Below are positions 43,019-60,384 of a stretch of DNA of 64,000 nucleotides, piece after piece. The stretch covers positions 365,552 to 429,551 of the forward strand of contig MU619237.1 in assembly GCA_025201805.1 (NCBI GenBank), in the 5' to 3' direction. The notes beneath the pieces are model-generated. The model saw only the letters and a list, made by a program, of their open reading frames with translations. It searched no databases and was not told the DNA's origin. The DNA is from Parasitella parasitica NRRL 2501. Taxonomy: Eukaryota > Fungi > Mucoromycota. A program made the translations under genes and the position numbers. Position 1 is the stretch's first letter, and each line of letters starts with the position of its first letter.

Positions 43019-44602
43019 ATGCTTTCTGTAAAACCAATTTATGATTACCTTGTTATTGGAGGTGGCTCTGGCGGCCTTGCTTCTGCTCGCCGTGCTAGTG
43101 GTATCCACGGTGCCAAAGTAGCGCTTATCGAAGCTCAACACCGTCTCGGTGGCACTTGTGTCAACGTAGGCTGTGTTCCTAAAAAAGTTATGTGGAATGC
43201 TGCATCCATTGCTGAATCTCTTCGTGATGCCAAGTCTTATGGGTTTGGTGATCATGAACCTGTCAAGTTCGATTGGCAATTCTTCAAAGAAAAGCGTGAT
43301 GCTTATGTCAAGCGTCTCAATGGCATCTATGAACGAAATCTGGGCAATGATAAAGTTGAACATATTCAAGGCCATGCTAGTTTTGTTAATAACAACACTG
43401 TCCGGGTCCAAACATCAGAAACTGAGTCAATTGAAGTTCAAGCAAAAAAGATTTTGATTGCTACAGGTAAGTTTTTTTTTAGCCAAGAAAACAGAGAGGG
43501 CATATCTAACATTGTGTCAAGGTGGTCATCCTTTGATCCCTGATATCCCAGGAGCTGAGCATGGCATTGACTCTGATGGCTTTTTTGAACTCGAACACCA
43601 ACCCAAGAGAGTTGCTGTCATCGGTACCGGCTACATTGGCATTGAATTGGCAGGCATTTTCAACACTTTAGGAACAAAGACAACTGTTTTCTCTCGTACA
43701 AAAAAGATTCTTCGTAGCTTCGACAGCATCATCCGCGACAACTTGTTGAAAGAGATGCAGGCTGTAGGCGTTGATTTTGCTTTTGATTCCAGTGTTCAGG
43801 CGTTAGTACGAGAGGGAAAAACTGGACCTATTACCGTTCAATATAAATCTGATGGTAACTCTGCTTCTTTGGAGGTGGATACTGTTGTTTGGGCTATTGG
43901 CCGTTTGCCCAACCTCAAGAAGCTCAATTTGGAGGCAGCTCATGTAACTTTAAATGACAAGGGCTATATCGAAGTTGATGATTATCAGAATACAAAGTCT
44001 GATGGTGTATACGCTTTGGGCGATGTCTGCGGTAAAGCCGAATTAACTCCTGGTAAGTGTGCCCATTGACGAGATCTTTTAAGCACTACTAAATTTGATG
44101 TATTGCAATAGTTGCTATTGCTGCTGGTCGCAAGTTGTCTGATCGTCTCTTTGGCGGTGAGCAATTTAAGGATTCCAAGCTTGATTACGATAATATCCCT
44201 ACTGTTGTTTTCTCTCATCCTACTGCCGGCACTATTGGTTATACTGAAGATGAAGCTCGTGAAAAGTTTGGTAATGAAAATGTCAAGACTTATACCAGTA
44301 AATTTACCAACATGTATTTTGCTATGCTTGAACACAAGGAGCCTACTGCTTATAAGCTTGTCTGTGCCGGTGCTGATGAAAAAGTCGTCGGTGTTCACAT
44401 TTTGGGCAGAGGAAGTGATGAGATCCTTCAAGGTTTTGGCGTTGCCGTTCGTATGGGTGCTACCAAGGCTAACTTTGATGCCTGCGTTGCTATTCACCCC
44501 TCTGCTGCTGAAGAATTGGTAAGTTTTTAATACAACTCATTTATTTCAACCATTTCAAAAAAAAAAAAATCTAATGCAATCCTGTAGGTTACCATGCGTT
44601 AA
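43019..44602 (+). CDS. glrA: Glutathione reductase (sex-locus-linked glrA)
   Basis: [21 protein letters not shown] redox disulfide, [31 protein letters not shown]; 4 exons. Confidence 0.96.
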
Positions 44603-45209
44603 AGAAATGTTCATGTAGAATAGTAGAAATAAACAATGTATTCTATAGATGTTGAGAGTGGTTCATCAGGCAACAATAGCCTAACAACATGATTACATAA
44701 GATAATATCATGGCATCAAGTTATTATCTATAACAAAAAGCGTGTTGTTCATTTCTCTTGAACTGAAATATACCTAGATTTTGGTTTTTTTTTGTGATAG
44801 TGGTTTGCAAAAATGATGATGGAATACATAGCACAGAAGAGGGAATTGGTTTTATGTTGGAAATAGAGTGAACTATGAATCGTGTTATCATTGAAACGAG
44901 CTTTTGGTATTGAAAATGAGCATAAGCAATAAATTTTGATCAATAGAGCTAAATTTAAAATATCTTTTCTCTTATAATCAGAAGATTCTGGACATTATAA
45001 GCTGAAAAAACCTATAATAGCTTGTCAAACAAATTTGGTGTTGAAAGTAAGATTGACTTGGTCTAGAAGTATACTATACGCTTGTATTTAGTGATTCTTA
45101 CTGTATTCGTCGTGTTAATTTTGACTCAATCGTATATACCATCTCGACCATTGACATTTTGCAATGTATGTCTTGTATATCTAGTTAGTTGAAAACGTTC
45201 ATACGAAAA

Positions 45210-45425
45210 TGACTGAGTGTTCCAACAAATGTCTTTGCTTGCCTAAAAGATATCCAAGAGTACGAAAGCACCATCCTGGTATAACACAAATTCATAGCTA
45301 CGCGAGCTATCAGTCCTTATTAGCACGAAAAATGTTGGTGGAAGAGACTAAAAACCGCAAATCATGGAAAAAATAAGAGATCAAATGTTTAGAAAATTGT
45401 ATCCTTTGTGTAAACGAAAGGCCTC
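45210..45425 (+). pseudogene. Possible heavily decayed HMG-box remnant (sexP-like?)
   Basis: Frameshifted fragments in HMG order: (C)PTNVF / YPRVRKHHPGITQ / ATRAISPY* / EETKNRK / MEKIRDQMFRKLYPL; requires several frameshifts. Confidence 0.3.
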
Positions 45426-45881
45426 ATTAGCAGCACATGAAATGAAACCTTGAGCGGTTTTATTCGTTCATCGATAGGTTCCTCGTTGTGCTTTGATATT
45501 CTCATTACTATAACAATGTGTAAAGATCGACTCGAGACTTGTTGAATCATACTGTTAAATGTAAATAATAACACTGATTGAACTAGATGGAAAGAGGTAA
45601 TATTATTGATATCTTAGAGATAAAATAAAATGGGAAATTTACATGGGATAAATTGGACAACTCAAAAAGCATAACCCGTACTTTTATGTAAAATTGAAGA
45701 TCATTTTGTTTATCATAAGAGGGTTCGCTTTTTCAAGACAGTGGTATCATCACCGCCCACAATACTTTTAGGCCACATTTACCAAGCTATAAATTTTGCT
45801 CTTGCAAGAGTATGTAAAGTAAATGTCAGGATCAGATACTCCATAAAAAACACTTGAAATATTGCTAAATTGGCTTGATTC

Positions 45882-45939
45882 AATAGTTTGACAATATTGC
45901 TTTTCATACAAAAAAAAAAAAAATAGTTTGACAATATTG
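45882..45939 (+). repeat. 18-bp direct repeat flanking a short poly(A)-ended insert (possible retro-insertion footprint)
   Basis: AATAGTTTGACAATATTG at 45882-45899 and 45922-45939 around cttttcatac(A)12. Confidence 0.6.
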
Positions 45940-46642
45940 ACGAAAAGAAATTATTTCCATGGGATTTTGCATGTTGATGTCAACCCTAATTTTTGTCTCA
46001 AGATATTTGGTTTGAATACCTCGATATGATAAAATTCAACTTATCGATCCAGGTGTAACACTTTTTACCAAGGCATATTTCAGGACATGCCATTTAATTG
46101 GTGTTAAGTTTACATTTGCTTTTTGAGAAGCGTTTTTCTTTGATATTCTAAAAACCAACATCATCACTATCGCTAAGCGATTTGAATAAAAAAAAACTAA
46201 AGCTAAAAATCAATATGATAAAGCGAATAAATTAAAAATATTTTGTCTTAGCACTGTAGAACTTTATTCATGCAGCTACACTTGTAAAAGCTCGAAATGT
46301 TGATCTGATGCAAATTGAGTCGATTTCAGACCCAACACAATGCTTCTTTTTGAAGGCTGTACCACTGGGTAGTTTAAGAATGCATGAACCACATTTGTGG
46401 ACAAAGCAATCAGGGTAACCGAGGGTTCCTTGATGACTGCACCTCCTCCCTATGTTCTTTTTTTCTGAATCCAGGGCCACTCTTCTTTTTCCATAAAAGT
46501 CTATAAACCGAAACTTGATTTTTATCCATATATGGGTAAAGACCGGAACTCGTTTGTTTTTCTTTACCCCTGAAACTCGGACCAACTTAACTAAACAACG
46601 TAACTTTTATTTCTTCAAATCATGGCATACACAGAAGGTGTA

Positions 46643-49600
46643 TTACTTCAAGGGAGCTTGGCAGACAGGACATTTTTTCCCTTCAGGACGCAAGACAAGA
46701 CGTCTGATAATTCCACATTCTGAATCCAAGGTATGTCCACATGGTAACTTACAGCTCAAAGGTTTGATACAAGAGCCGCATGGTTCACAACAACGGCGCA
46801 TACACTGATGATTGCACTCGAGGAACTTCTCGCACTGCTGCTTGCAGCGGTATTCATTATGATCATAAGGATGGCATTTCAAAGTACACTGAAAAATAAA
46901 CAATTAGAGATGATTGTCATCAGCTTAATTTACCCTTACTCTGTGTCCACAAGGTAACAGTTCATTACACTGCTGTTGGCAGCCACCTTCTTCCACAGTT
47001 GTGAAATCAACGGGCCATTGAACCTGCGTAGGTTGGCCATGTTTTTGGCACTTGAGAACCAGTTTAGTGCCAACCATATTTTCATTCTGATCTTCAAGGT
47101 TGCCAATTATTTCATTCCACAAGTCGCTTCTTTCACACAGAAGTCTTGCATTGCCAAGAATGTAGAAGCCCTACATGTATAGCGATATTGAGCAATCTAT
47201 CGTTATATGGACACACGCATCATACTTACATGTTTTGCTCTGGATAAAGAAACACAAACACGATTGACAACCTTCAAGAAACCAATTTGGCCAGCTGCAT
47301 TGCTTCTTACCAGGGAAAGAATGATGATTTTGTTTTCTTCACCTTGGTAGCCATCCACACTACTGACTTGGATCAGCTCTGGATCCATATCTGGTCTTCT
47401 TTCATCTCGAAGGGCTCGCTTGATCATGGTCTTTTGGCCTGAATACATTGTAATGATTGTGATTTCCTGTGGTTGATATCCTTGCAAAAGCAGATACACT
47501 GCTAATTTGGCTGCCATTTTGGCTTCATGTTCATTGACCTTGGATGCAGACTCGCTCATATTGGTTTCGTCTTCATTATGAGCCAAAAAGAATAGCGATT
47601 GATCCATTCCACGAATGGGAGGATATGTCAGCACATCAGGATGGTCCATAAGAGGAGGGTCCTTGTAAATTGGGTTGATGAGAGAACGAATTTCAGGACG
47701 CATTCGTCTTTGATGAGACAAGCGCGTGAACGGAAAGTCGTTCATGACTAGACGCTCAAACAGCGAGACACCTAGTGCATGGTTTTCGGCCAATTCATGA
47801 ACTGCTGTTGATGGTCTTAATTGCTGGTGATCACTAGTAGATATCATGTATTAGTGCCTACATCTCGTATCAATCCCAAGCTACTCACCCGATCAATATA
47901 AGGTGCTCCAAGGAATTGGTCAGTGCAGATATAATGTGAGATTCCAACATTTCAGCTGCTTCTTCCACAACCATGACTCTAGGACGCATTTCCTCTAGCA
48001 AATCGTGGTATTTGGCCTGCATTGGTTTAGACAACGTTATGTGTGATCAAATGGGGTACTTACTGCAGCTGTACTTGTCATGCCAACAACTCTGTTCTGC
48101 CTGCAAATCCTTGCTTCAAAATCGGCTATAACTCTTCGAATACTTTGCGATTTCTCGTAGTACTGCCTCATGAGAGCGTTCAGCTTGGCTTCCAATGCGG
48201 CATTTCTCTGATCTATCCACATTTTGTGTGCCTTAAGGCGTACAGGCAGGGGCCACATCGACAAGTCGTCATCCTTCATCCAGCGCTCCAACGAGTGATT
48301 GTGGCTATCCTGCTCCAGCACAGCTTCGTCAATATTGTCGTCGAAAAAGTTGAATTTGGTTGATTCAAAGGTGTTTGTGGTTTTCATTTTACTATAATTG
48401 ACAATCTTTCTTTCAGGGCGCTCACCAGGAGCGACTTCGGTTTGTCTTTTGTAGTTTTTACCGATCTGAATAAACGGATATTTGGTTTCTGGCTGATCAT
48501 CGCCTTGAAAGCCTATGATGACTTCTTGAAGCTCTTCTTCTTCGATCATATCTCGCTCGTCAGTTGTATCGTCAAACACCAAGCCCTTTTCTTGTTCAAG
48601 AATACTTTGCTTCAAATCATCAGCTAGCGATGACATTTCTCCAGCATCATCAACATAATCAATCGCATCCTTCAGCCATCCTTCAACAGGGTTGATGGTC
48701 TTTTCCTTTACGGAGCTCACTGTATTAGGATTTCCACCAGCCCAATCATTATTTGCGCCTTTGTTGCTGGTTCTACCTTTACTGGGATGTGGCTTCTGTC
48801 TGTTGTTATTTCTGTTATTTCTACTGTTGACAGGCGCTTTGGGCTTGACTGGCTCTGAGCTGACAACCCATTCGTCATCAGAGTCGTCAGCGACATGATA
48901 GTCATTGAGACTAGTCGCTGCTGCAACAGGTTTGCTCTTTTCCCGTTCGCCTGCTCTTTTTAATGAATCGATCTGCTTGGGTCTCAGTCCTTTGATGCTC
49001 TCTATGTATTCAATTGTGACGCATGGCTCCTCATATAATTCGATGATTGTTTCCCTGATTGCCTTTACAAGGCCATCGCGGTCTCGATACAAGCGGGCTA
49101 TTCCACGGGGCCGGTCATGCTCCTTCTTCAATTCATACAAAGTGTGTTCTTTCAGCAGTTCAGATTTTGACCTTCCACCTACACGGACGATTTTAGTGGT
49201 GTAATCCAGAATGTGTTCTAAAAATTGATCGAGAGCTTTTGCAATCGAATTTGAGTTAATCGGTTGGATATCGCAAGTTTGGCACTAGCAGATCTTACCA
49301 TGATTTGTCTGGCAAATACAAACAATGGGGCCCATAGAATTATCGAAATTGTTCAAGAGTACTCGCATGGCATAAGTGCCAACAAAAGTCTTACCAGTAC
49401 CCGGAGGTCCTTGCACGATCGACAAATTATGTGATAGAATGGTTCTCAAAGCATCCATCTGGGTGCGATCCATGCCAGTGTTGTAGCTGGGCCATTCTTC
49501 CAGGATATTCACTGGCCAGCGATCGCGACGTATGTTTCTTGACTGGACGTTAATGTCGTAGACATTTTTCTGTGCGGCGTAGTGAGGCACAAGAACTTCG

Positions 49601-50817
49601 TTTGACAGCTTTACCAAATAATCAGAAAAGGGCAACTGATCCGCTTTGACGTTTTTAAAGACGTTGAGCACATGACGGTATGCTTCAAAATAGCCGTCTG
49701 TGGCTTCAATCATGACATAGGTGTCATTCTCGGTTAAGGATGGATCTCCAAAACCCAACGGCTGTTCGTCGTCATCCCTTTCAAGATAAATGTCCACTAA
49801 ATACTCGAAGCGATTTGGTCCACGCATTGGCTCGTCTCCTCTGTTGACGATAGTAGCAACCTTAAGATCCTTTTCAAAATGATCCTTGGAGAGCAGCACT
49901 AACGTACCAGGCATCAATCTCTTGGACTGCTGCCAGTTCACACGAACATAGTAAGGTAACCGAAAGCTGACTCTGTATAAGGGCTGGCGCGTACCAAATA
50001 CAATTGCGTTCAAATGAACCTATACGCATGTAAGAAAGCGAAGGTTTTGCTACAAGTTGGCTGCTACTTACATGCTCGTACAAGCGGTATGGTCTTTGTT
50101 GAGATACTTGCTCCATCGAAATGCCAGCATCATCATTGATGTTGGTATCATTGAAGACTTCCTTGTATCCTTTCACGGCTTTCTGCAGAGGTATCAAGAA
50201 GTCTTGGCGCATCAATTCAAAATGGGTATACAAATACTGGTCAGTGCTGTCGTATGGTTGTTTGACACGGTTTACAGGGACGTCCGGAAACGGGTCTCTG
50301 TAATTGCGTTGATCCCACTCATTGGGATCTCGAAGCTCTTCAGCTATCACAATTTGTTCAAAGTTTGGAATAATGTCCTGTCCACGGAAGGCCGTATAGT
50401 CTGTCACTTTTGAGAATATTGGTGCGTCCTCAATATCCATATTCAGTCGGAAAGTCGTCGTAGCCTCTGGTTCTCGCGTGCTAAACTTGTCTTGTACGTA
50501 ACCATGGTCTTCTTGTCCTTGCTCATTCCAGACGGCTTGCGTCTCGGGAGAACCTCCCCAACCTCGTTGCGAGTCAACTGCCCAGCTCTGAGATGGAGCA
50601 ACGTTTCCAAAATCAAACTTTGAGCGTGCAGGTGGCGGTCTCCTGCTAGGAGTTATCTCAAATTCATTTGTAAGGTTATTAAAATTGGCGGTAACGACAT
50701 TTGGTCCACTTGTGCTATGTGTTTACATTGGTCAGAATCACGCCTTCATTATCAATAGCTCTTTTATTACAATTGTGAATCCCAGTCGCTTTTGGTGCTG
50801 TTGTTATAGCGAGACAT
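46643..50817 (-). CDS. rnhA: SF1 Upf1-like RNA helicase with NFX1-type zinc fingers (ZNFX1/Sad-3-like); sex-locus-flanking rnhA
   Basis: QGPPGTGKT, CQTNHALDQFLE, VVGMTSTAA, VEEAAE, IGDHQQLRP, SLFERL, QRRMRPEI, VDGYQGEENKIIILSLVRSN, NRVCVSLSRAK; C-terminal CGH.C..CH repeats; about 8 exons. Confidence 0.93.
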
Positions 50818-50890
50818 TGTTTTGAAACACTAAAGAAAAGCTAAAATACAGAAACTAAAGTCTTGGATGAACTATGACCGGCATTTAATT

Positions 50891-51472
50891 TTATTTTTCA
50901 ACGTTAATCCATAAATCTATTATGGTACGAAAATCGATGTTAGCTCCATCAATTATTAAGTGTGCATCATCAACACTAGATGAAGGTAAAGTAGGATTTG
51001 ATAATTCTTTTACTATATAATCAAATGGTTCAACTGGAGATACCGGTTTGTTCATGCAATCTGTCATTTCAATCTGTGTGTGAGATGTAGAAATCTCGTC
51101 ACTGGATGAGCTTGATGATTCAATTACTTGAATGCTTGTTTTTTTAGTTTTTGATCGTGGAAGTCGCTTTTTCTTCGTAATAGGATTGAATTTGTAAAGC
51201 GGATGTAATTTTTTGTGCTGTATGCTCTTTTCTTCGGCAACTCGGCTCCACTGTCTTTTTTCATATTCTGACATTAGTTTCCAAGCATCCCTTGCCATAC
51301 GTGATATATCACACTGCTTTTCTTGCTGGTTCATGACATCGCGAAATTTAGAATTAAAGTAGGTCCGGAAACAAAGGAATGAGTTTGATGGACGTTTAAT
51401 TTTCTCTTTAGTGGGTCCAGTCTTCTGGGATTCTGAAAGAATGTCTTCAGCAGTAGTGATAACTATCTTCAT
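50891..51472 (-). CDS. sexM: Mating-type HMG-box transcription factor, most likely SexM (193 aa, intronless)
   Basis: KIKRPSNSFLCFR..DISRMARDAWKLMSEYEKRQW..AEEKSIQHKKLHPLYKFNP plus a basic tail; lies between rnhA and tptA/algA. The short length, N-terminal HMG box and YxFxP ending favour sexM over sexP. Confidence 0.85.
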   Translation of the reverse strand: MKIVITTAEDILSESQKTGPTKEKIKRPSNSFLCFRTYFNSKFRDVMNQQEKQCDISRMARDAWKLMSEYEKRQWSRVAEEKSIQHKKLHPLYKFNPITKKKRLPRSKTKKTSIQVIESSSSSSDEISTSHTQIEMTDCMNKPVSPVEPFDYIVKELSNPTLPSSSVDDAHLIIDGANIDFRTIIDLWINVEK

Positions 51473-52326
51473 TTTTCTCAAGGATATAATTGTAGGAGGA
51501 AAGAAAAATGCCCTAATTTGACTCAGGCACGGATGATTTATATTTTCCAAAACAATGAAAACGGAAAGTGCAGCCAGGAGTTACACGGAGGGGTGGCATC
51601 ATATCAATGCTTCGGCATGATCTACTATACTACTCAAATTTTAAAAAAAATCGTGTTACCTCCTCTAATGAAAAAGAGGATTGCAGAGTTTAAACCCATT
51701 TTGGATAGTATAGAATCTTTTCAAACAAAAAATGTGCAATCTTCATTGTTGAGCTCCTGAAAAATTTAAAGAATCTATAGGTAATCACTTCACTTAAGAT
51801 ATTGAGATTAAGAGTTGTTGAAAGTAATTTCAGGGACTGTTCGTAGTAAGGGCTTAGTAATAATCCCATTATTTTGCTAATAATAAATCTTGTTATTAGA
51901 TCATTACTACTATATATCAGCCAGCTATTAGACACATACCTTTACAATACATATCATTTCTAAAGTTCTGTCCTTACATGAGATTGTATCGCCTTTCATT
52001 TAGGGAAAACGAGTCTATAACATTTGCTCAAGGAATAAATAAATATCCAAGCAATACTTCTTATCAACCCAGTTTTCAAAAAATAACGAAGACTATTACA
52101 GAATAGCACTTTTCTCACCTTGGCATAAGTGATGTGCCGAGCCTTCGAAATCAACCACAGGAAGATGCTGCAATAGTTCCACAATCAACATTGGCCTGGT
52201 ACAACAAGAATCAACCCGTTGTACCTATCAGAGCCACGAGCCTACAGCAAAGATAAAAAAAAAAAGGCCACCTTCATCTAACAAATATAAAAAATCCAGA
52301 AATACAGAAAGAATTATCGATATATC

Positions 52327-52800
52327 ATGCTACCGATTTGAAATGCAGTTTGGAATTAGGTACTTGGAGGCCAACATTTTGTGCCATCTCGATAATCTTA
52401 TTTTCAATTGCTGCATGCGGTATATATTAAACTGCTTTACAAACAACATTGATAAATACATTGCTAACGCCTTTTGATTCAAAGTAAATCTTACAATGGT
52501 ATTATCTAGCCTGGCTGCTTTTGGTGCTATATTATTGCAGTAGTCAAATCGAGTACTGTTTTCTGGACTCAGCATAATGCCTGGAGATTCGGGTCTAGTA
52601 CTTCGATATTTAATTCGTAGTATAGTATTAATGTATATAGGCTTTTGCGCCATTGTTCGTTATTACAATATTCTACAACCTTACGTTCAAAACCTGTTCA
52701 TACAGAGAGTGTCCATGTCTGCATTATTACTTATGCTGGATGTCGTCCTCGCCTACTCTTTTATTTTTTCGTATGATATTGTTGGGTTACCCTATTGATC
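52327..52800 (+). pseudogene. tptA: Pseudogenised triose-phosphate-transporter-family gene (psi-tptA), divergent from the sex gene
   Basis: 52391: DNLIFNCCMRYILNCFTNNIDKYIANAF*FKVNLTMVLSSLAAF/WCYII, matching the family pattern C..WY.SS.LTNN..K.I...F.YP.TLT..QF. After an AG acceptor, 52641: AFAPLFVITIFYNLTF.../VSMSALLLMLDVVLAYSFIFSYDIVGL, matching AL.PLFTV..Y....Y.SL.PLTLGV.LACSF. In-frame stops, frameshifts, and the expected syntenic position. Confidence 0.75.
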
Positions 52801-53279
52801 TTCCAACAGCCGTCAAATAGAGATGGTCAAAAAGACTACACCAAGACTTGCTTCCATACAGTTGTATGAACTTGTATCAAAACTAACTTGGAGTAACCAA
52901 TGAATCTTGGTCTCACGCCTTCTATTTTGTGGCTATTAAAAAGTTATAGATTCAAATATTGGCTTCTAAATCCAGATCAGACAAAAATGAGACTGAAATC
53001 AAAAGCCATGCAATGGGGAGCAAACTTGATGGCGGTTGCGATGTAGAAAAATATTACCAAGACGTGAGATACGAGGCTGACGATATATAATCTTGCGTTC
53101 AATAATCTAACCTGGCCATTGGTGCTGTACATTGTGCTCTTTGACAGATATCCCAAAATTGTTTCAAGGTTAAACCTGAAGGTTTCAAACGTCATATTTA
53201 ATAAGTCTCAGTGTGTCAGCCTTTGTTATCAATTTTTTTCTTCCCACTTTTTCGATTAAAATTAAATTAGAATAGAACA

Positions 53280-54678
53280 ATGGGACCGAGGAAGCCAGAA
53301 GTTGAATACATTTCGTTATCGAAATTACAAGCCCAAAAACGAGCAGAACCAACCGAAAAGACAAGGGAGGCTTACAAGTGCTTGGAAAAGTTAGCAAACA
53401 ATGCATTGAAAAGTGGGCCATACAGCATCACTTTCGACAAGAAGCAGGCCCATACTGCACCAACAGGCGATATGCGAGATTTCCTTAGTTACGCTCCGTA
53501 AGTTACTCCAAAATGCTCTCAAACGATCGATCTCTAACCTCTTGCTTTATATCTTAGATATTGGTGGCCTGTAAGCTGAGATGATGTTTTCTTTGTGATT
53601 TTGAAAACTGAATAGCGTATTAAAACTTAGGAACATCCCAACGATCGCAACACAAAATACATCCGTAAAGACGGTAAAAAAAATCCAGGTATTACATTGC
53701 AATGCATGTGTCTGACAAGGGGTAGAGCCACTGATAGATGAATTTTTTTTATTATAGACGTAGCGGAAGCAAGAGATCAATGCCAGTTAGAATCCGTCGC
53801 AGAGAGCATACAGTTTTTATGCTTGGGATACTTTTTTTTCAATAACGAAAACTATGCTATTCATGCGGTCTCATTACTGGACTCTTTCTTTGTCAATGAA
53901 AAGACGCGAATGAATCCCAATCTCAATTATGCTCAATTCGTAAGAGGCTCTCAGAATCACTCGCATCGAGGCCGCGGCGAAGGCGTCATTAGCTCCAGAG
54001 CGTAAGAAGCAGGTTATTTGTTTTTTTAGACACATAAAAAAAGCTAAATTAATATTCTCTTTTAGCTTATCCCGCATCGCGAATCTTTTACCGCTTTTAG
54101 ATGCATTCCATGGCTACTATGCATTAAAGCAATATATACACTCTTGGTTCGGCTCATATCTTGAATGGCTCCAGTCGAGTCGTGTCGCGTTAGAGGCTGC
54201 AAAAGCTACAAATAATATCCATACGTGGTATACTGTGCAGGTAGCTGCAATAGAGCAATTCTTGCACCCTGTATCCCCTCAAGTATCCAACGTACTGTAC
54301 ACATTCTTCAAGGAATCCCTGCCAAAGCAAATGGACGCCAAGACAGGCAACCAGCCGCACGAATCAAAGCGAACAAGGCCGCTTCATTATCTCACCTTCA
54401 ACCTGCAAGCCATCGTATTTCTCGCAGAGGTATCCAAGGACGTCGGACTAGATGTTTGTCGTTCCAATGATCTGGTTAAACTAGCGACGTACATCACGAA
54501 ATATGCATCTGACGATAATCAGGACATTACAGAGGCCGTTCGCTGCGTCGAGATCATTGCCAACGGAACTGGCAATCAAGACGAAACCTTTCGATTTTTC
54601 CTTGACAAGGCTTATCATTGCAAATTTGCAGAGAAAATGGGTGGCCCCAAAAACGCGATCCATGTGCTGTGGTCTTGA
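53280..54678 (+). CDS. algA: Alginate-lyase-domain protein (sex-locus-linked algA; about 5 exons)
   Basis: APTGDMRDFLSYAP|YWWP|..YIRKDGKKNP, FFVNEKTRMNPNLNYAQFVRG, NNIHTWY, QPHESKRTRPLHYLTFNL. Confidence 0.88.
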
Positions 54679-54879
54679 AACTACTGTGAATATCGTCAAC
54701 TGTCAATATTTTGATGCAACTTTTAATAAAACCATGCATCAAGGTACGCAAACATTGGAATTATACTTTATTTAGATATATCGTTTTTTTTTTCTTTCTT
54801 TGCTTTCAAATATTATCATACCGTCAACCGACACAATGGTGCCCTTTTTCTCTCATTTTCCTTTACTCAATTTGCTTGG

Positions 54880-57800
54880 ATGAGAGTTGCTATTGACCGC
54901 GGGCTGCCGTGGCTACTCATATTTATATCGTTCATTTCAGTAGGGTAAGTTTTTTTTTGCAGCAAAGGCTCAGAGTAATGTATGTGGTACGACACTGACA
55001 TATGCTGACAGAACCAAGGCAGCAGATGGTAATACGCCCCTTCCATCATCCTCTTTGTCTTTGCGCAATGGGATTGACCAACTGGATTTACCAGTGCTCA
55101 ATGCTGACCAAAATGCGGGAAAGGAGGCTCTCGATGATATATTTGCAATAAATGCCGTTACTGTAACAGCTACAGCAACAGCCAAGGTGTCTTCTACTGT
55201 CACAAGCACCATCAAGTCAACCGTTCCCGCCTCCAGTTCAACCACTGGCACAGTTTCTCCCAAAAGCACTTTGACTGTTGTTGTTTCTACCACTGTGTCA
55301 CAGTCTTCTACATCAAAAACTAGTTCTGCGGCATCTAGTACTTCCAGTAGGAGCACTTTGACAACAGCAACTACAACGACAGCCAAAACGACTTCCAGCT
55401 CTACGTCTTCACCAAGGTCGACGTCAACACCTACGCCAACGCCAACGCCAACGCCTACACCTGAGCCAGTTCCAGATCCAGTTGTTTATCCAACGGAAAT
55501 CGATACTGATTTACTAATCTTTTGCTTAAACAACATTGATCAGACCAGTTGTGCAGATCTCTTCCGCCTAATTCACTTCTTTTTCACTGCAAGGCTCAAT
55601 TCAGATCCGGTTCTCGTGGAGTATCTTTTGGAGATTGGCGTCGATGTGCCTGAAACAGATGTAGTCACTGCGACCTCTACGTCAACATCTAGTGTAAGTT
55701 TCCTCTTGTTTACCTGACGAGCTTGGTATATTCAAACTTTATAATGTGTAGCTCTTCTTTACTGAATACACAACGACTACTGTCAGTACAAACTCAATCG
55801 AAGTTGTCAGATCAACATCCACAGTATACGTAGATTTCGTAAGTACTGGGGAGTGCAAGGAAAAGATACAAGTCTACTAATAGCTGTTGATAGAGCGATG
55901 ATGGCGGCAGTACAGCTGTCGAAACTAATGGACAGATCTCCTGCTCTCCTGCACCTCCCCCCGAAACTGTCACGGCCATTTCGACTCAAGTTTCCACCAG
56001 CACTGCCACTGTTCTGCACGTTTCAACTGCCACTGTAGTGAATCTGGTTACGGTAACACCTGATCCAGCACTAGGCACACTGACCGCCGGTGGGCCTGTT
56101 GAATGTGGTTTGGTTTTGGCTAATACTGCAGTATTCAGCTGTCTGGCTATGATAGCGCAAGTCACTCCACCACCGTTTCCATCTGAATGCAGTGAATTGC
56201 CCGACTACTTGGGTCCCATTGATCCACTGGCAGCATCTTGTTATGCTAGCGAACCTGTAGTAACTGATACTTGTTCTGCCTTACAGATAACTCCTACTAC
56301 TGCCACCTACACAGTAACAGATCCTTCATTCACAAGTACGGTAACCGCTCCTGCTTCAACTGTAACAGCTCCTCCCACCACAATCACCGAGCCTGCTTCC
56401 ACTATCACAGCTACAGAGGTAATTGTTGTTGCTGATCCGCTAGGCCATGATACCTGTGGGTTAATTTTGGGCGGTAACGGCGAGGGTATGTTGGATGGTG
56501 ATGTGGCGTCCTCTTGCTTGTCCAGTTTGTACAGCAGAGTATCGTATCTACCTTATACAACTACACTTGTTCCTTTGACCGAAACAATATTTGCAACTAC
56601 GACCCAAACCGACACATTTACGGCTACCGAAACATCGCTAGATATTCGATTAATTACTGCGTCCATAAGCCATACTGTTACAGAAACAGCCACGGATTTC
56701 GAGACAGAGTATGAGCTGACTACCGCTACCGTCACAGAGCATGATACATCTACAACTACAGCTACTGTAACAACTACAGATACAGCTTATAGGACAGAGC
56801 ATGAACTGACTGTGGCTACCGTAACAAGCACAGAAACTCAGACCAAGACAGACGTGGATATCAGAATAGTTACAGCCACTATCGAATCTACCTTGACTAC
56901 AACTGTGCACGATACTGTCACTAATTTCGCAACGCTGACCAGTACAGACATCAAGACAACTACAGACACAATTACAGCAACAGCAACTACCACAAGTACA
57001 GATCGTTTAACAGATATAGACATCCGACTTGTCACTGCGACGGTGACAACCACATCCATACTGACAGACTATAAGACTATCACTGACTATGCAACTCTTA
57101 CTGCGACAAGTTTCAACACGATAACAGAAACAGCAACAGCCACTGCCACAACTACAGCAACCAATTTTGTAACTAAGGTAGACGTTAGCCTCGTTACTGC
57201 AACCATCAGCGCTACAGCAACAGTGACAGAGAAGGACGTTGTTACCAGTTTAGCAACCATCACAGCAACAGACCTGAGAACTACCACAGACACCATCACA
57301 GCAACATCTACAGTTACTGAAAGAGTCACTGAGACTGAGGTTAGCCTCATCACTGAGACTCTGAGCAGCGTTGCCACTATTGTTGAGTATAATACTGTAA
57401 CTGACGTATCCACAGTTACCAGCAGTGTATTTAGCACCATTACAGACGTCATTACTGATACTTTGACCACCACTCAAGTCAAGACTGAAGTAGACGTTCG
57501 CCTGGTTACCGCCACATTGACCACCACTGCTACCGTTGTCGAGCGTGACACAGTAACTAGTTTGGCGACCATTACAAGCATAAGCACAAGCACAAGCACA
57601 AGCATTGGTACAGTAACAAACACACTCACCGAAACAGCAACGTCTACACAGACTCAAACAAGAGTAGACGTAAGCCTAGTTACTGCCACTATTACAGCAA
57701 CGTCTACAGTTTCAAGTATCGATACTCTCACCGATTATGCAACAGTGACAAGCACAAAATACAGCACATTGACAGATACAATCACATCCACATCCACATC

Positions 57801-60384
57801 AACGTCTACACTCATTAAACATGTCACAGACGTCGATGTTCGTCTGATCACAGCTACTATAAGCACAACAGCCACTATTACTGAGCATGCTGTATCTACT
57901 GAATACGTCCCAGTAACTCAAAGCGGCACTGCAGGCACCATTGCTACTGTAACTATATCAGAGCTGGTCACAACAACGCAGCGTGTAACTGATGTTGATG
58001 TCAGGCTCATTACGGCTACAATGACTACTACAGCCACAGTAACTGATCGTGATATCATTACGCAATTCAATACAATCACCAACACAGCAACAAGCACTAT
58101 CACCTCTACTGCCACTGCTACGACAACTGCTACCGAGCGGGTGACAGATGTAGATGTCCGTCTGGTTACAGCCACGCTGACAACGACAGCCACTTTAACT
58201 CAGCATGAGACTCTCACTGAATTGGCCACGATAACAAGCACTGCAACTACGACTAGTCCTGTCACTATAACCAGCACTGCTACAACCACAACAACTACTC
58301 ATGTCACGGATATAGATGTCAGGCTTGTCACCATAACAAACACCCAAACATCGACTCAGCACGAGACATCCACTGCTTATGCAACGATTACAAACACAGA
58401 GACATCGACTGCAACCAACATTATTACTGATTTCAGCACCATCACATCGACAGCTACTCAGCGTGTGACAGATGTGGACATCCGTTTAGTAACTGCAACA
58501 ATCAGCACTACTTCTACAGTGACAGAGCGTAGCACAGTAACAGACGTCGCTACCGTCACTCGAGATGTAATAGAAACCGCCACCATTACATCGACAATCA
58601 CTGACGTAACTACAGCCATTACCACATCAACAGCTCACATTACAGATGTTTCTGTGAGCTTGGTTACAGCCACCATCCATGATACATTGACAGCTACTGT
58701 GCATGACACTATTACGTTGCATGATACAATAACAGATACTACAACCAACACAGTTACCGCGACAACCACTGCTGTCAAGACTTCTACTCAGTATGTCACC
58801 GAAGTGGATATACGATTGGTCACGGCCACCATCACGACGACAGCTACTGTCACTGACCACAACGTGTCCACCTCTTTAGCCACAGTGACACAGAGCGTCT
58901 TTGAAACAGACTTTGTTACAGAAACTTGGACTACAACAGCAACTACCACATCAACAGATTTACGCACTAGTGTGGATGTCCGTCTTGTTACTGCTATTAT
59001 CAACAACACAATTGTACAAACATCGCTCCAAACGTTTACGTCTTACCTGCCACTTACAATCAACGTGACAGACACTCAAGTATTGACAACAACCACAACA
59101 GCTACTAGCACAGACACTGTGCATGTTACTGATGTAGACGTTCGTCTCGTAACAGCCACAGTTGACAAGACGGATACTGCTACTACAACGACTACGGAAA
59201 CCTCCTTGGGTACATCCACGACAACTGAGTATGTCACTAAAACGGACGAGGTCCATCTGCATATTGGAACAAGCGACCATATTGTGCATCAAAGCGATTT
59301 GACTATAACGTGTATCGGTGAAGACGGCAACGTGGAGATGCATGGCTACGTAACGAATGATTTTGGAGCTACAACCGTCTATTATGGAGACTATGATGAG
59401 GATGGGCATAACCATCACTATCACGGCCATGGAGACTACTACGGAGGAGGTTATTACAACGGGCACCGTTATGGCAAGTACTACGGAAGCAGTGAGGTCT
59501 GCAGCACATTCACTACTATCGATGAAAACGGTAGCCAAGTTACCGTCACTTCGACCGAGATGATTGCTCATACCGATATGCTTGATTATACTTTGGTAAC
59601 AGCAGAAAGCACTACATATGGGGTCGGACAGCAGCTAGTTGTTAGTACAAATATTGACATGTAATAAGGAACAACTTCCATTAACTTGATTTTCTTTAAA
59701 TGCTAGTATAAAACCGTTTGCTCAACGTCAACCAAGAGCCCAACTGCAGAACCCACAGCTGATTTCAGGGATCCATCAATATCAAGCATGGATGTCAATA
59801 ATTTGATCATCAACTGCGAAACTTTGACTGAAACAAAGTCAGAAACGTTTGGCCATTGCTCTGTAAGTTTTTATTATACGTGTATCTAAAGACGAAACGA
59901 CTCATAGCAACTGCTGCGATAGGATGTATTTATGACTTATACATCGTCATTGTGCGAAATCTGCAGTGCTCCTGTTCATGTCACGTCTACTCAAGTACTG
60001 ACGATCCCAGTCATTATGGAAAGCCATGAGGCCAACCACTCCACGAAGCAAGACGATACAGAGGTTGTTTACGTCACGGAAACAGTTGGGGAGCCTGAAG
60101 CAACAGCATATATCGCTTCTAATAGCATCAGTGACACTGAAAATGGCGAGGATACAGAAGTAGTGCATGTCACTGTAACTGCGCAAGGCGAGCCGCTTGA
60201 TATTTCCACAGGACCAGCTACAAGCGGCGGTGACGAGCAAGAACATGCTGCTGCTTCAAAACCAGAAGATTCAGAGGGCCATGTTGTTTTCGCAACTCCA
60301 ACTATTCAATACAACCAAGGCTACTCGGAAGAAGACCCACATCTTTTGTCTGCCACAAAAACTGTCAATGGAGGAGCTGTTTAA
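54880..60384 (+). CDS. Large secreted Thr-rich tandem-repeat protein (mucin/adhesin-like, ~1,700 aa, 6 exons)
   Basis: Signal-peptide-like exon 1 MRVAIDRGLPWLLIFISFISVG; ORFs 55055-55717, 56038-59664 and 59932-60384 joinable by GT-AG introns; about 16 repeats with core T(D/E)VD(V/I)RLVTAT. Confidence 0.85.
56630..59200 (+). repeat. Coding tandem repeat array, period ~50-60 aa (~155-185 bp)
   Basis: Recurrent VD(V/I)(R/S)L(V/I)TAT motif; degenerate at the DNA level. Confidence 0.9.

Follow-up and report, generated by a model that had tools for sequence, protein, structure and literature searches.

Does a sex locus that has lost the working copy of one of its flanking genes belong to an ordinary heterothallic fungus, or is it the product of a duplicated, homothallic one? 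SexM is an HMG-box transcription factor that specifies the (-) mating type, and the question is raised by its gene in a 64,000-nucleotide stretch of the Parasitella parasitica NRRL 2501 assembly (32.8 Mb, 450 contigs). This stretch, here called the window (G000:C1:365552-429551; positions are counted from its first letter), carries in order glrA (+), rnhA (-), sexM (-), a tptA pseudogene (psi-tptA, +) and agl, also named algA (+). We called genes from open reading frames (ORFs) and Pfam scans and compared spliced gene models exon by exon. The analysis makes it very likely that the stretch is the ordinary minus (sexM) sex-locus allele of a heterothallic Mucorales fungus, in which tptA decayed in place.

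The gene at the center of the locus encodes 193 residues with one HMG box. Its ORF spans 50891-51550 on the minus strand, and the alignment with SexM [Parasitella parasitica] P0001 (200 aa; UniProt A0A3G1J4X9), which was the sole match in a word-based protein search, begins at the ATG at 51472 and covers the full length with 83% identity (E 1e-99). This published protein, for which there is no contig on record, is the same gene, with 17% of the residues differing and a length difference of seven residues. Identity to the SexM proteins of Mucor is 26-28% (E 1e-9 to 1e-11). We computed an HMG-box tree from the window protein, P0001, 15 other boxes of the genome, four SexM-type proteins of Mucor and the sex-locus HMG genes of two relatives. 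In this tree, the window protein paired with P0001 (support 97/96) and fell within a clade of the Mucor SexM proteins and the HMG protein of a metagenome contig, L091 (support 92/90), with the 15 other boxes of the genome outside. Judged by likeness and tree, the window gene is orthologous to SexM.

The neighborhood points the same way. Reference loci were found by searching a representative library with the variable exon of rnhA (367 aa). In Mucor velutinosus (L061) the order is agl (-), tptA (-), sexM (+), rnhA (+), X (+) and glrA (-), where X is a gene of 853 aa without a Pfam family (853-860 aa at this position across Mucor). The Logan Mucor contig L072 has the same order, with an additional ORF of 1230 aa beyond agl, and L091 reads sexM-like, rnhA, Cyt-b5, X, glrA. 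On L062, a Logan contig from a more distant relative, rnhA is preceded by an HMG gene of 306 aa that is unlike SexM and is probably SexP. When flipped, the Mucor order becomes glrA (+), X (-), rnhA (-), sexM (-), tptA (+), agl (+); the window agrees with it in order and orientations but lacks X and a working tptA. The sexM stop codon lies 73 bp upstream of the rnhA start codon in a head-to-tail arrangement, and agl is 1.8 kb from sexM, as expected from the synteny of Mucorales sex loci. An initial annotation, made from the letters of the window, had recognized a sex locus of the sexM type with a dead tptA, based on an intronless HMG gene directly upstream of a ZNFX1-like helicase, with glutathione reductase on one side and an alginate lyase on the other. 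All of these genes are supported by Pfam, the HMG protein groups with SexM and not with non-sex HMG proteins, and the call is thus borne out by SexM identity, tree and synteny alike.

Comparison with another strain delimits the mating-type-specific part of the locus. A DNA contig of 41,139 nt, obtained from runs X5 and X6, differs from the window at 2 of 1825 positions over 49000-50824 and at 9 of 2292 over 52609-54900, the flanks being 99.6-99.9% identical. Between them, 50825-52358 (1534 bp) is replaced by 1499 letters that have no alignment at 80% identity. Alignment then returns in pieces, over 52359-52402 with 3 differences and over 52399-52462 with 6 (9 in 108 nt taken together), the two separated by an insert of 40 letters, and 52463-52608 is replaced by 60 letters. 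Divergence between the alleles is therefore about 8% in this border zone inside the tptA relic, against 0.1-0.4% in the flanks. On the left, the border precedes the rnhA start codon (50817) by 7 nt; on the right, it lies within psi-tptA. Unrelated sequence between near-identical flanks is what characterizes idiomorphs, and the sizes of 1534 and 1499 bp match published M. circinelloides sex loci, whose idiomorphs span 1495-1811 bp and extend over the promoter of tptA and, in one subspecies, over that of rnhA as well (PMC3116813). The replacement in X5/X6 thus bears the signature of the opposite (+) idiomorph of the same lineage, presumably containing sexP. Run X7 had the same share of words as X5/X6.

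A further run filed under the same species label (X11, from a 2014 study) gave a different picture. It was compared over 49000-50821 and 53273-54793 and showed 308 differences in 1822 nt of rnhA and 152 in 1038 nt of agl, corresponding to 83-85% identity, with no alignment between 50822 and 53272. Because of this divergence, and of the 83% identity of the window SexM to P0001, strains filed as P. parasitica appear to fall into two deep lineages about 15% apart.

Between sexM and agl, tblastn with the sex-linked TptA of M. velutinosus (L061) found four collinear pieces of a triose-phosphate transporter (TPT) gene, in three frames and on the expected strand. Their bit scores were 46.6, 31.2, 30.8 and 20.8 (grouped E 5e-16 and 1e-5), whereas 100 shuffled versions of this 1.7 kb reached 23.9 bits at most, and a second Mucor TptA query (L082) reproduced the matches. 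About 125 of about 470 codons are still recognizable. The pieces contain one in-frame stop, the end of exon 1 (about 30 codons) and the intron have shrunk to 30 nt, and the final 190 or so codons of exon 2 are unrecognizable. A weak trace of the N-terminus is possible at 52065-52337 (29.6 bits, 23% identity). The Pfam TPT family (PF03151) had no match in the window at E<=1 and none on its ORFs at E<=10, which marks the element as a relic and not a member gene. Homology was detected only against the sex-linked Mucor TptA; tblastx of the genome's own TPT paralogs against both gaps of the locus gave noise only. The 3' remnant at 52609-52789 is common to both alleles, with only 3 differences, and the pseudogene is therefore not private to the sequenced strain. 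Some Mucor strains seemed to have lost exon 2 of tptA, but their DNA is identical and the difference is one of gene calling.

Contigs of run X4, which is RNA as judged from adapter ends and spliced joints, had a depth of 0 over 52349-53136. The relic thus looks silent, with the reservation that contigs show presence and not absence. From the same run we obtained a minus-strand sexM transcript extending from 50964 to about 52348, with contigs covering 50964-51876 and 51987-52148 and depth up to 52348.

The sexM mRNA appears to have a long 5' untranslated region with two introns, one at 51877-51939 and the other at 52015-52118 (both CT..AC on the plus strand). The transcript thus extends over almost all of the idiomorph and runs antisense to the possible N-terminal trace of psi-tptA.

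Elsewhere in the genome, relatives of the two genes lost from the sex region lie together on contig C21. Here X' (-), iPGM (+) and TPT' (+) form a block at C21:72658-80482, in which X' and TPT' are 5 kb apart. The block is collinear with one in M. fragilis (L052), at 90-95% protein identity, and has the same neighbors in Thamnidium (L051), whereas X' and TPT' have 55% and 63% identity to the sex-linked Mucor genes; Mucor X is equidistant (55%) from the X' of Parasitella and that of M. fragilis. Because of the likeness to M. fragilis and the equal distance of X, we consider X/X' and tptA/TPT' to be old paralog pairs and the block to be older than the split of Parasitella and Mucor. The block may stem from an ancient duplication of the region around the sex locus. 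The TPT gene on C21, considered as a candidate for the true tptA, is a conserved non-sex paralog, located beside iPGM in Thamnidium and M. fragilis as well.

A search for a second sex gene gave no candidate. None of the genome's other HMG boxes clusters with SexM or the probable SexP of L062. Used as a query, the latter found only generic HMG boxes in the genome (<=25.5 bits), and C21 has no HMG-box match. In the assembly, the variable exon of rnhA and the last exon of agl each occur once. A second glrA-like gene on contig C143 (61% identity) lies among unrelated genes and was rejected as part of a second sex segment, its neighbors being a 744-aa protein with two HMG-box matches, a lysine methyltransferase and an OPT transporter. 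Several candidates for a SexP reference were also rejected: the HMG gene of M. velutinosus is of the SexM type, that of L091 is SexM-like, and the Logan Mucor contigs reached via rnhA and tptA exons all have a 255/256-aa gene at the sexM position. Searching a protein atlas for SexP returned only 'MATA-HMG'.

These results bear on three other explanations of the locus. The initial annotation had favored segmental duplication with reciprocal gene loss, as in homothallic Syzygites, by which the genome should hold a second segment with sexP and an intact tptA. A pseudogenized flank does occur in Syzygites too (PMC3834313), and paralogs of TPT and X do sit together on C21; but that block recurs gene for gene in M. 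fragilis and is too distant from the sex-linked copies to be anything but ancient, it has no HMG-box match, the tested rnhA and agl exons are unduplicated, the probable SexP of L062 as a query found only generic HMG boxes, and another strain has a different allele at the sexM site. Duplication-derived homothallism is thus scarcely credible and already largely refuted, whereas the annotation's other suggestion, local degeneration, fits better, as tptA decayed in place and its 5' half falls within the border zone where the two alleles are not identical.

The 1.5 kb replacement might instead be a sexM allele that has diverged, or an unrelated indel, and in either case the mating system could not be read from it. 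The replaced letters were not read, and with a second lineage under the same label, 83-85% identical in rnhA and agl and 83% in SexM, divergent material does occur under this name. However, the flanks differ at so few positions that both alleles belong to one lineage, the sequence switches shortly before the start of rnhA and in the 5' region of tptA, and the lengths of the two alleles are those of Mucor idiomorphs, which leaves this explanation improbable. As to the tptA-like pieces, the blank Pfam result and the lack of tblastx matches to the genome's own TPT paralogs would be compatible with chance matches or with a stray fragment of another TPT gene. Yet four collinear pieces on the expected strand, in the expected place between sexM and agl, with scores set against those of shuffled sequence and two agreeing Mucor queries, make such an origin extremely unlikely, and the dead tptA of the initial annotation stands.

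Some points weigh against our reading of an ordinary minus allele with a tptA decayed in place. The gene content of the 1499-letter replacement was not seen, so that its sexP is one we infer. The X5 and X6 contigs are identical in length and in their differences and may be one data set, in which case the (+) allele comes from one strain. The absence of sexP from the genome was judged with a probable SexP (L062) and a short HMG-box tree, no labelled SexP having been obtained, and the silence of psi-tptA with contigs of one RNA run. Finally, we infer both the buffering by TPT' and X' and a contribution of reduced recombination, as discussed below.

Relative to the Mucor order, two flanking genes have been lost in different ways, tptA by decay in place and X by removal without detectable trace. 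Both losses may have been tolerable as the old paralogs TPT' and X' survive side by side on C21, and the location of the tptA promoter and 5' end inside the non-recombining idiomorph may have aided the decay. On this basis tptA could be a case of sex-locus degeneration on a small scale, in which the idiomorph captured the promoter and 5' part of the gene, decay followed in both mating types and TPT' buffered the loss; we regard this as a tentative and rather doubtful proposal. If true, it would imply that the whole sex-locus neighborhood was once duplicated.

The usual order of the locus is agl/tptA/sex/rnhA, and M. saturninus and M. mucedo are known to lack tptA (PMC7928374). Parasitella shares gene order and orientations with the M. 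circinelloides complex (tptA - sexM/sexP - rnhA; Lee 2008, Li 2011, PMC3116813) and with M. velutinosus (L061), as it does the position of sexM 60-73 bp upstream of rnhA and an idiomorph of about 1.5 kb that may include the promoters of tptA and rnhA. It differs from them in that tptA is a pseudogene, X is absent and SexM identity is only about 28%. Like Parasitella, M. mucedo and M. saturninus (agl/sexP/rnhA; Wetzel 2012, PMC7928374) have no working tptA between agl and the sex gene, but Parasitella has a recognizable relic, which reveals decay in place. By paralog identities, Parasitella seems nearer to the M. circinelloides/fragilis group, so its loss of tptA was probably independent of that in M. 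mucedo and M. saturninus. In the homothallic loci of Syzygites megalocarpus, a flank of the sex gene is likewise pseudogenized (Idnurm 2011, as cited in PMC3834313). In contrast, we found neither a second sex gene nor duplicated flanks in the Parasitella genome, and the alternative allele in another strain indicates heterothallism.

New in this analysis are the tptA relic, the disappearance of X, the C21 sister block and the borders of the idiomorph, of which the left is mapped to the base and the right to about 250 bp; the tptA-less variant of the locus and a public P. parasitica SexM were known. The analysis supplies a public assembly with a checked annotation of its (-) sex locus and shows that a tptA-less sex locus can originate by decay in place, leaving the accepted picture of sex determination in Mucorales unchanged. 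The two lineages under one name are of consequence for the classic studies of mating-type-dependent parasitism with Parasitella and Absidia.

The fate of X was followed in the spacer between glrA and rnhA, which is the site of this gene in Mucor. In the spacer, tblastx with the rnhA-glrA intervals of three relatives yielded nothing at E<=0.1, and the best tblastn match to protein X scored 19.2 bits, compared to a median of 18.5 for shuffled sequence. Two short blastn matches of 64 nt (E 1.6e-5) and 48 nt (E 2e-4) to DNA within the gene X of a relative were not taken as a relic because the protein-level test was at chance. As judged from these comparisons, gene X is lost from the Parasitella sex region without detectable trace. 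A candidate fossil HMG box at 45210-45425 was rejected, since the HMG-box part of the queries scored about 15-16 bits there, which is at chance level; the best match to an HMG protein anywhere in the spacer (21.6 bits, E 0.027) was to the non-box tail of SexM. A search for a duplicated rnhA end in the spacer likewise remained at chance (18.9 bits). The initial annotation had placed a relic between glrA and rnhA and described decayed coding remnants all around the locus; this holds for tptA, whereas the spacer contains no detectable trace of any relative's gene and the other remnants are at chance level.

Table 1. Features of the Parasitella parasitica (-) sex locus and of the sister block on contig C21
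Feature	Position	Strand	Remarks
glrA, glutathione reductase	43019-44602	+	Pfam Pyr_redox_2, Pyr_redox, Pyr_redox_dim on three large exon ORFs
glrA-rnhA spacer	44603-46642		2.0 kb; site of gene X in Mucor
rnhA, ZNFX1-like helicase with NF-X1-type zinc fingers	46643-50817	-	Pfam ZNFX1, AAA_11, AAA_12
(-) idiomorph core	50825-52358		1534 bp, holds sexM; 1499 unrelated letters in the other strain
sexM coding sequence	50891-51472	-	193 aa, one HMG box, intronless; Pfam HMG_box E 7.4e-8
Mosaic right border, inside psi-tptA	52359-52608		alignable, about 8% divergence between alleles, indels
psi-tptA, decayed triose-phosphate-transporter gene	52391-52789, possibly from 52065	+	tblastn with Mucor TptA exons
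psi-tptA piece, TptA exon 1, 131-176	52391-52522	+	54% identity, 2-codon deletion, in-frame TGA
psi-tptA piece, TptA exon 1, 176-206	52519-52611	+	
psi-tptA piece, TptA exon 2, 3-18	52641-52691	+	
psi-tptA piece, TptA exon 2, 21-51	52697-52789	+	
agl/algA, alginate lyase	53280-54678	+	Pfam Alginate_lyase on two exon ORFs
X'	C21:72658-74661	-	880-aa open frame, 55% identity to Mucor X (L070, L093, L009 block)
TPT'	C21:79444-80482	+	63% identity to Mucor TptA

The genes flanking the idiomorph are intact (Table 1). glrA has multiple exons; direct reading of the sequence places an intron at about 44523-44587, followed by a short terminal exon, and in tblastx the gene is 80-95% identical to the glrA located beyond rnhA in M. 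velutinosus. rnhA is spliced and expressed. Residues 16-1257 of the M. velutinosus RnhA align along 50710-46646 with 70-75% identity, and the RNA contig of run X4 extends to 50827, with three introns in the compared stretch (49236-49298, 50018-50069 and 50715-50770; all CT..AC on the plus strand). agl has five exons and four introns and is expressed, as seen from an mRNA contig over 53247-54754 in the same run. Its spliced contig has GT..AG joints at 53497/53631, 53686/53756 and 54001/54066, and tblastx gives 62-77% identity to the agl of M. velutinosus. One agl exon is a micro-exon of 13 nt (53558-53570, +), recognized when 13 unplaced letters of the RNA contig found an exact match within an intron.

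A few observations concern the loci of relatives. In L062 (Logan SRR25833176, 1-4940), a homolog of the Ser/Thr-rich window ORF at 55055-55717 lies 1.8 kb upstream of the probable SexP; between the two there is no trace of TptA, and two agl exons as queries found no agl on the contig, which would make this another reduced sex-locus flank. Contigs from five Logan runs (L064-L068) carry the rnhA homolog of one often-sequenced relative (48% identity in the variable exon) without a called HMG gene upstream; at that place they have an ORF of 404-652 aa without a Pfam family. M. velutinosus has a second contig with agl-tptA-sexM-rnhA (L063; JASEJX010000022.1, 31 kb), in which the locus lies beside a Ty3-type retrotransposon and rnhA is split into two gene models. 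This contig is probably an assembly redundancy.

Beyond agl, the window has two Thr/Ser/Val-rich ORFs on the plus strand, at 55055-55717 and 56038-59664. Their positional counterpart in Mucor is the 1230-aa ORF that adjoins agl in L072 (809-4501). The place of these ORFs beside the sex region looks conserved and not peculiar to the Parasitella genome.

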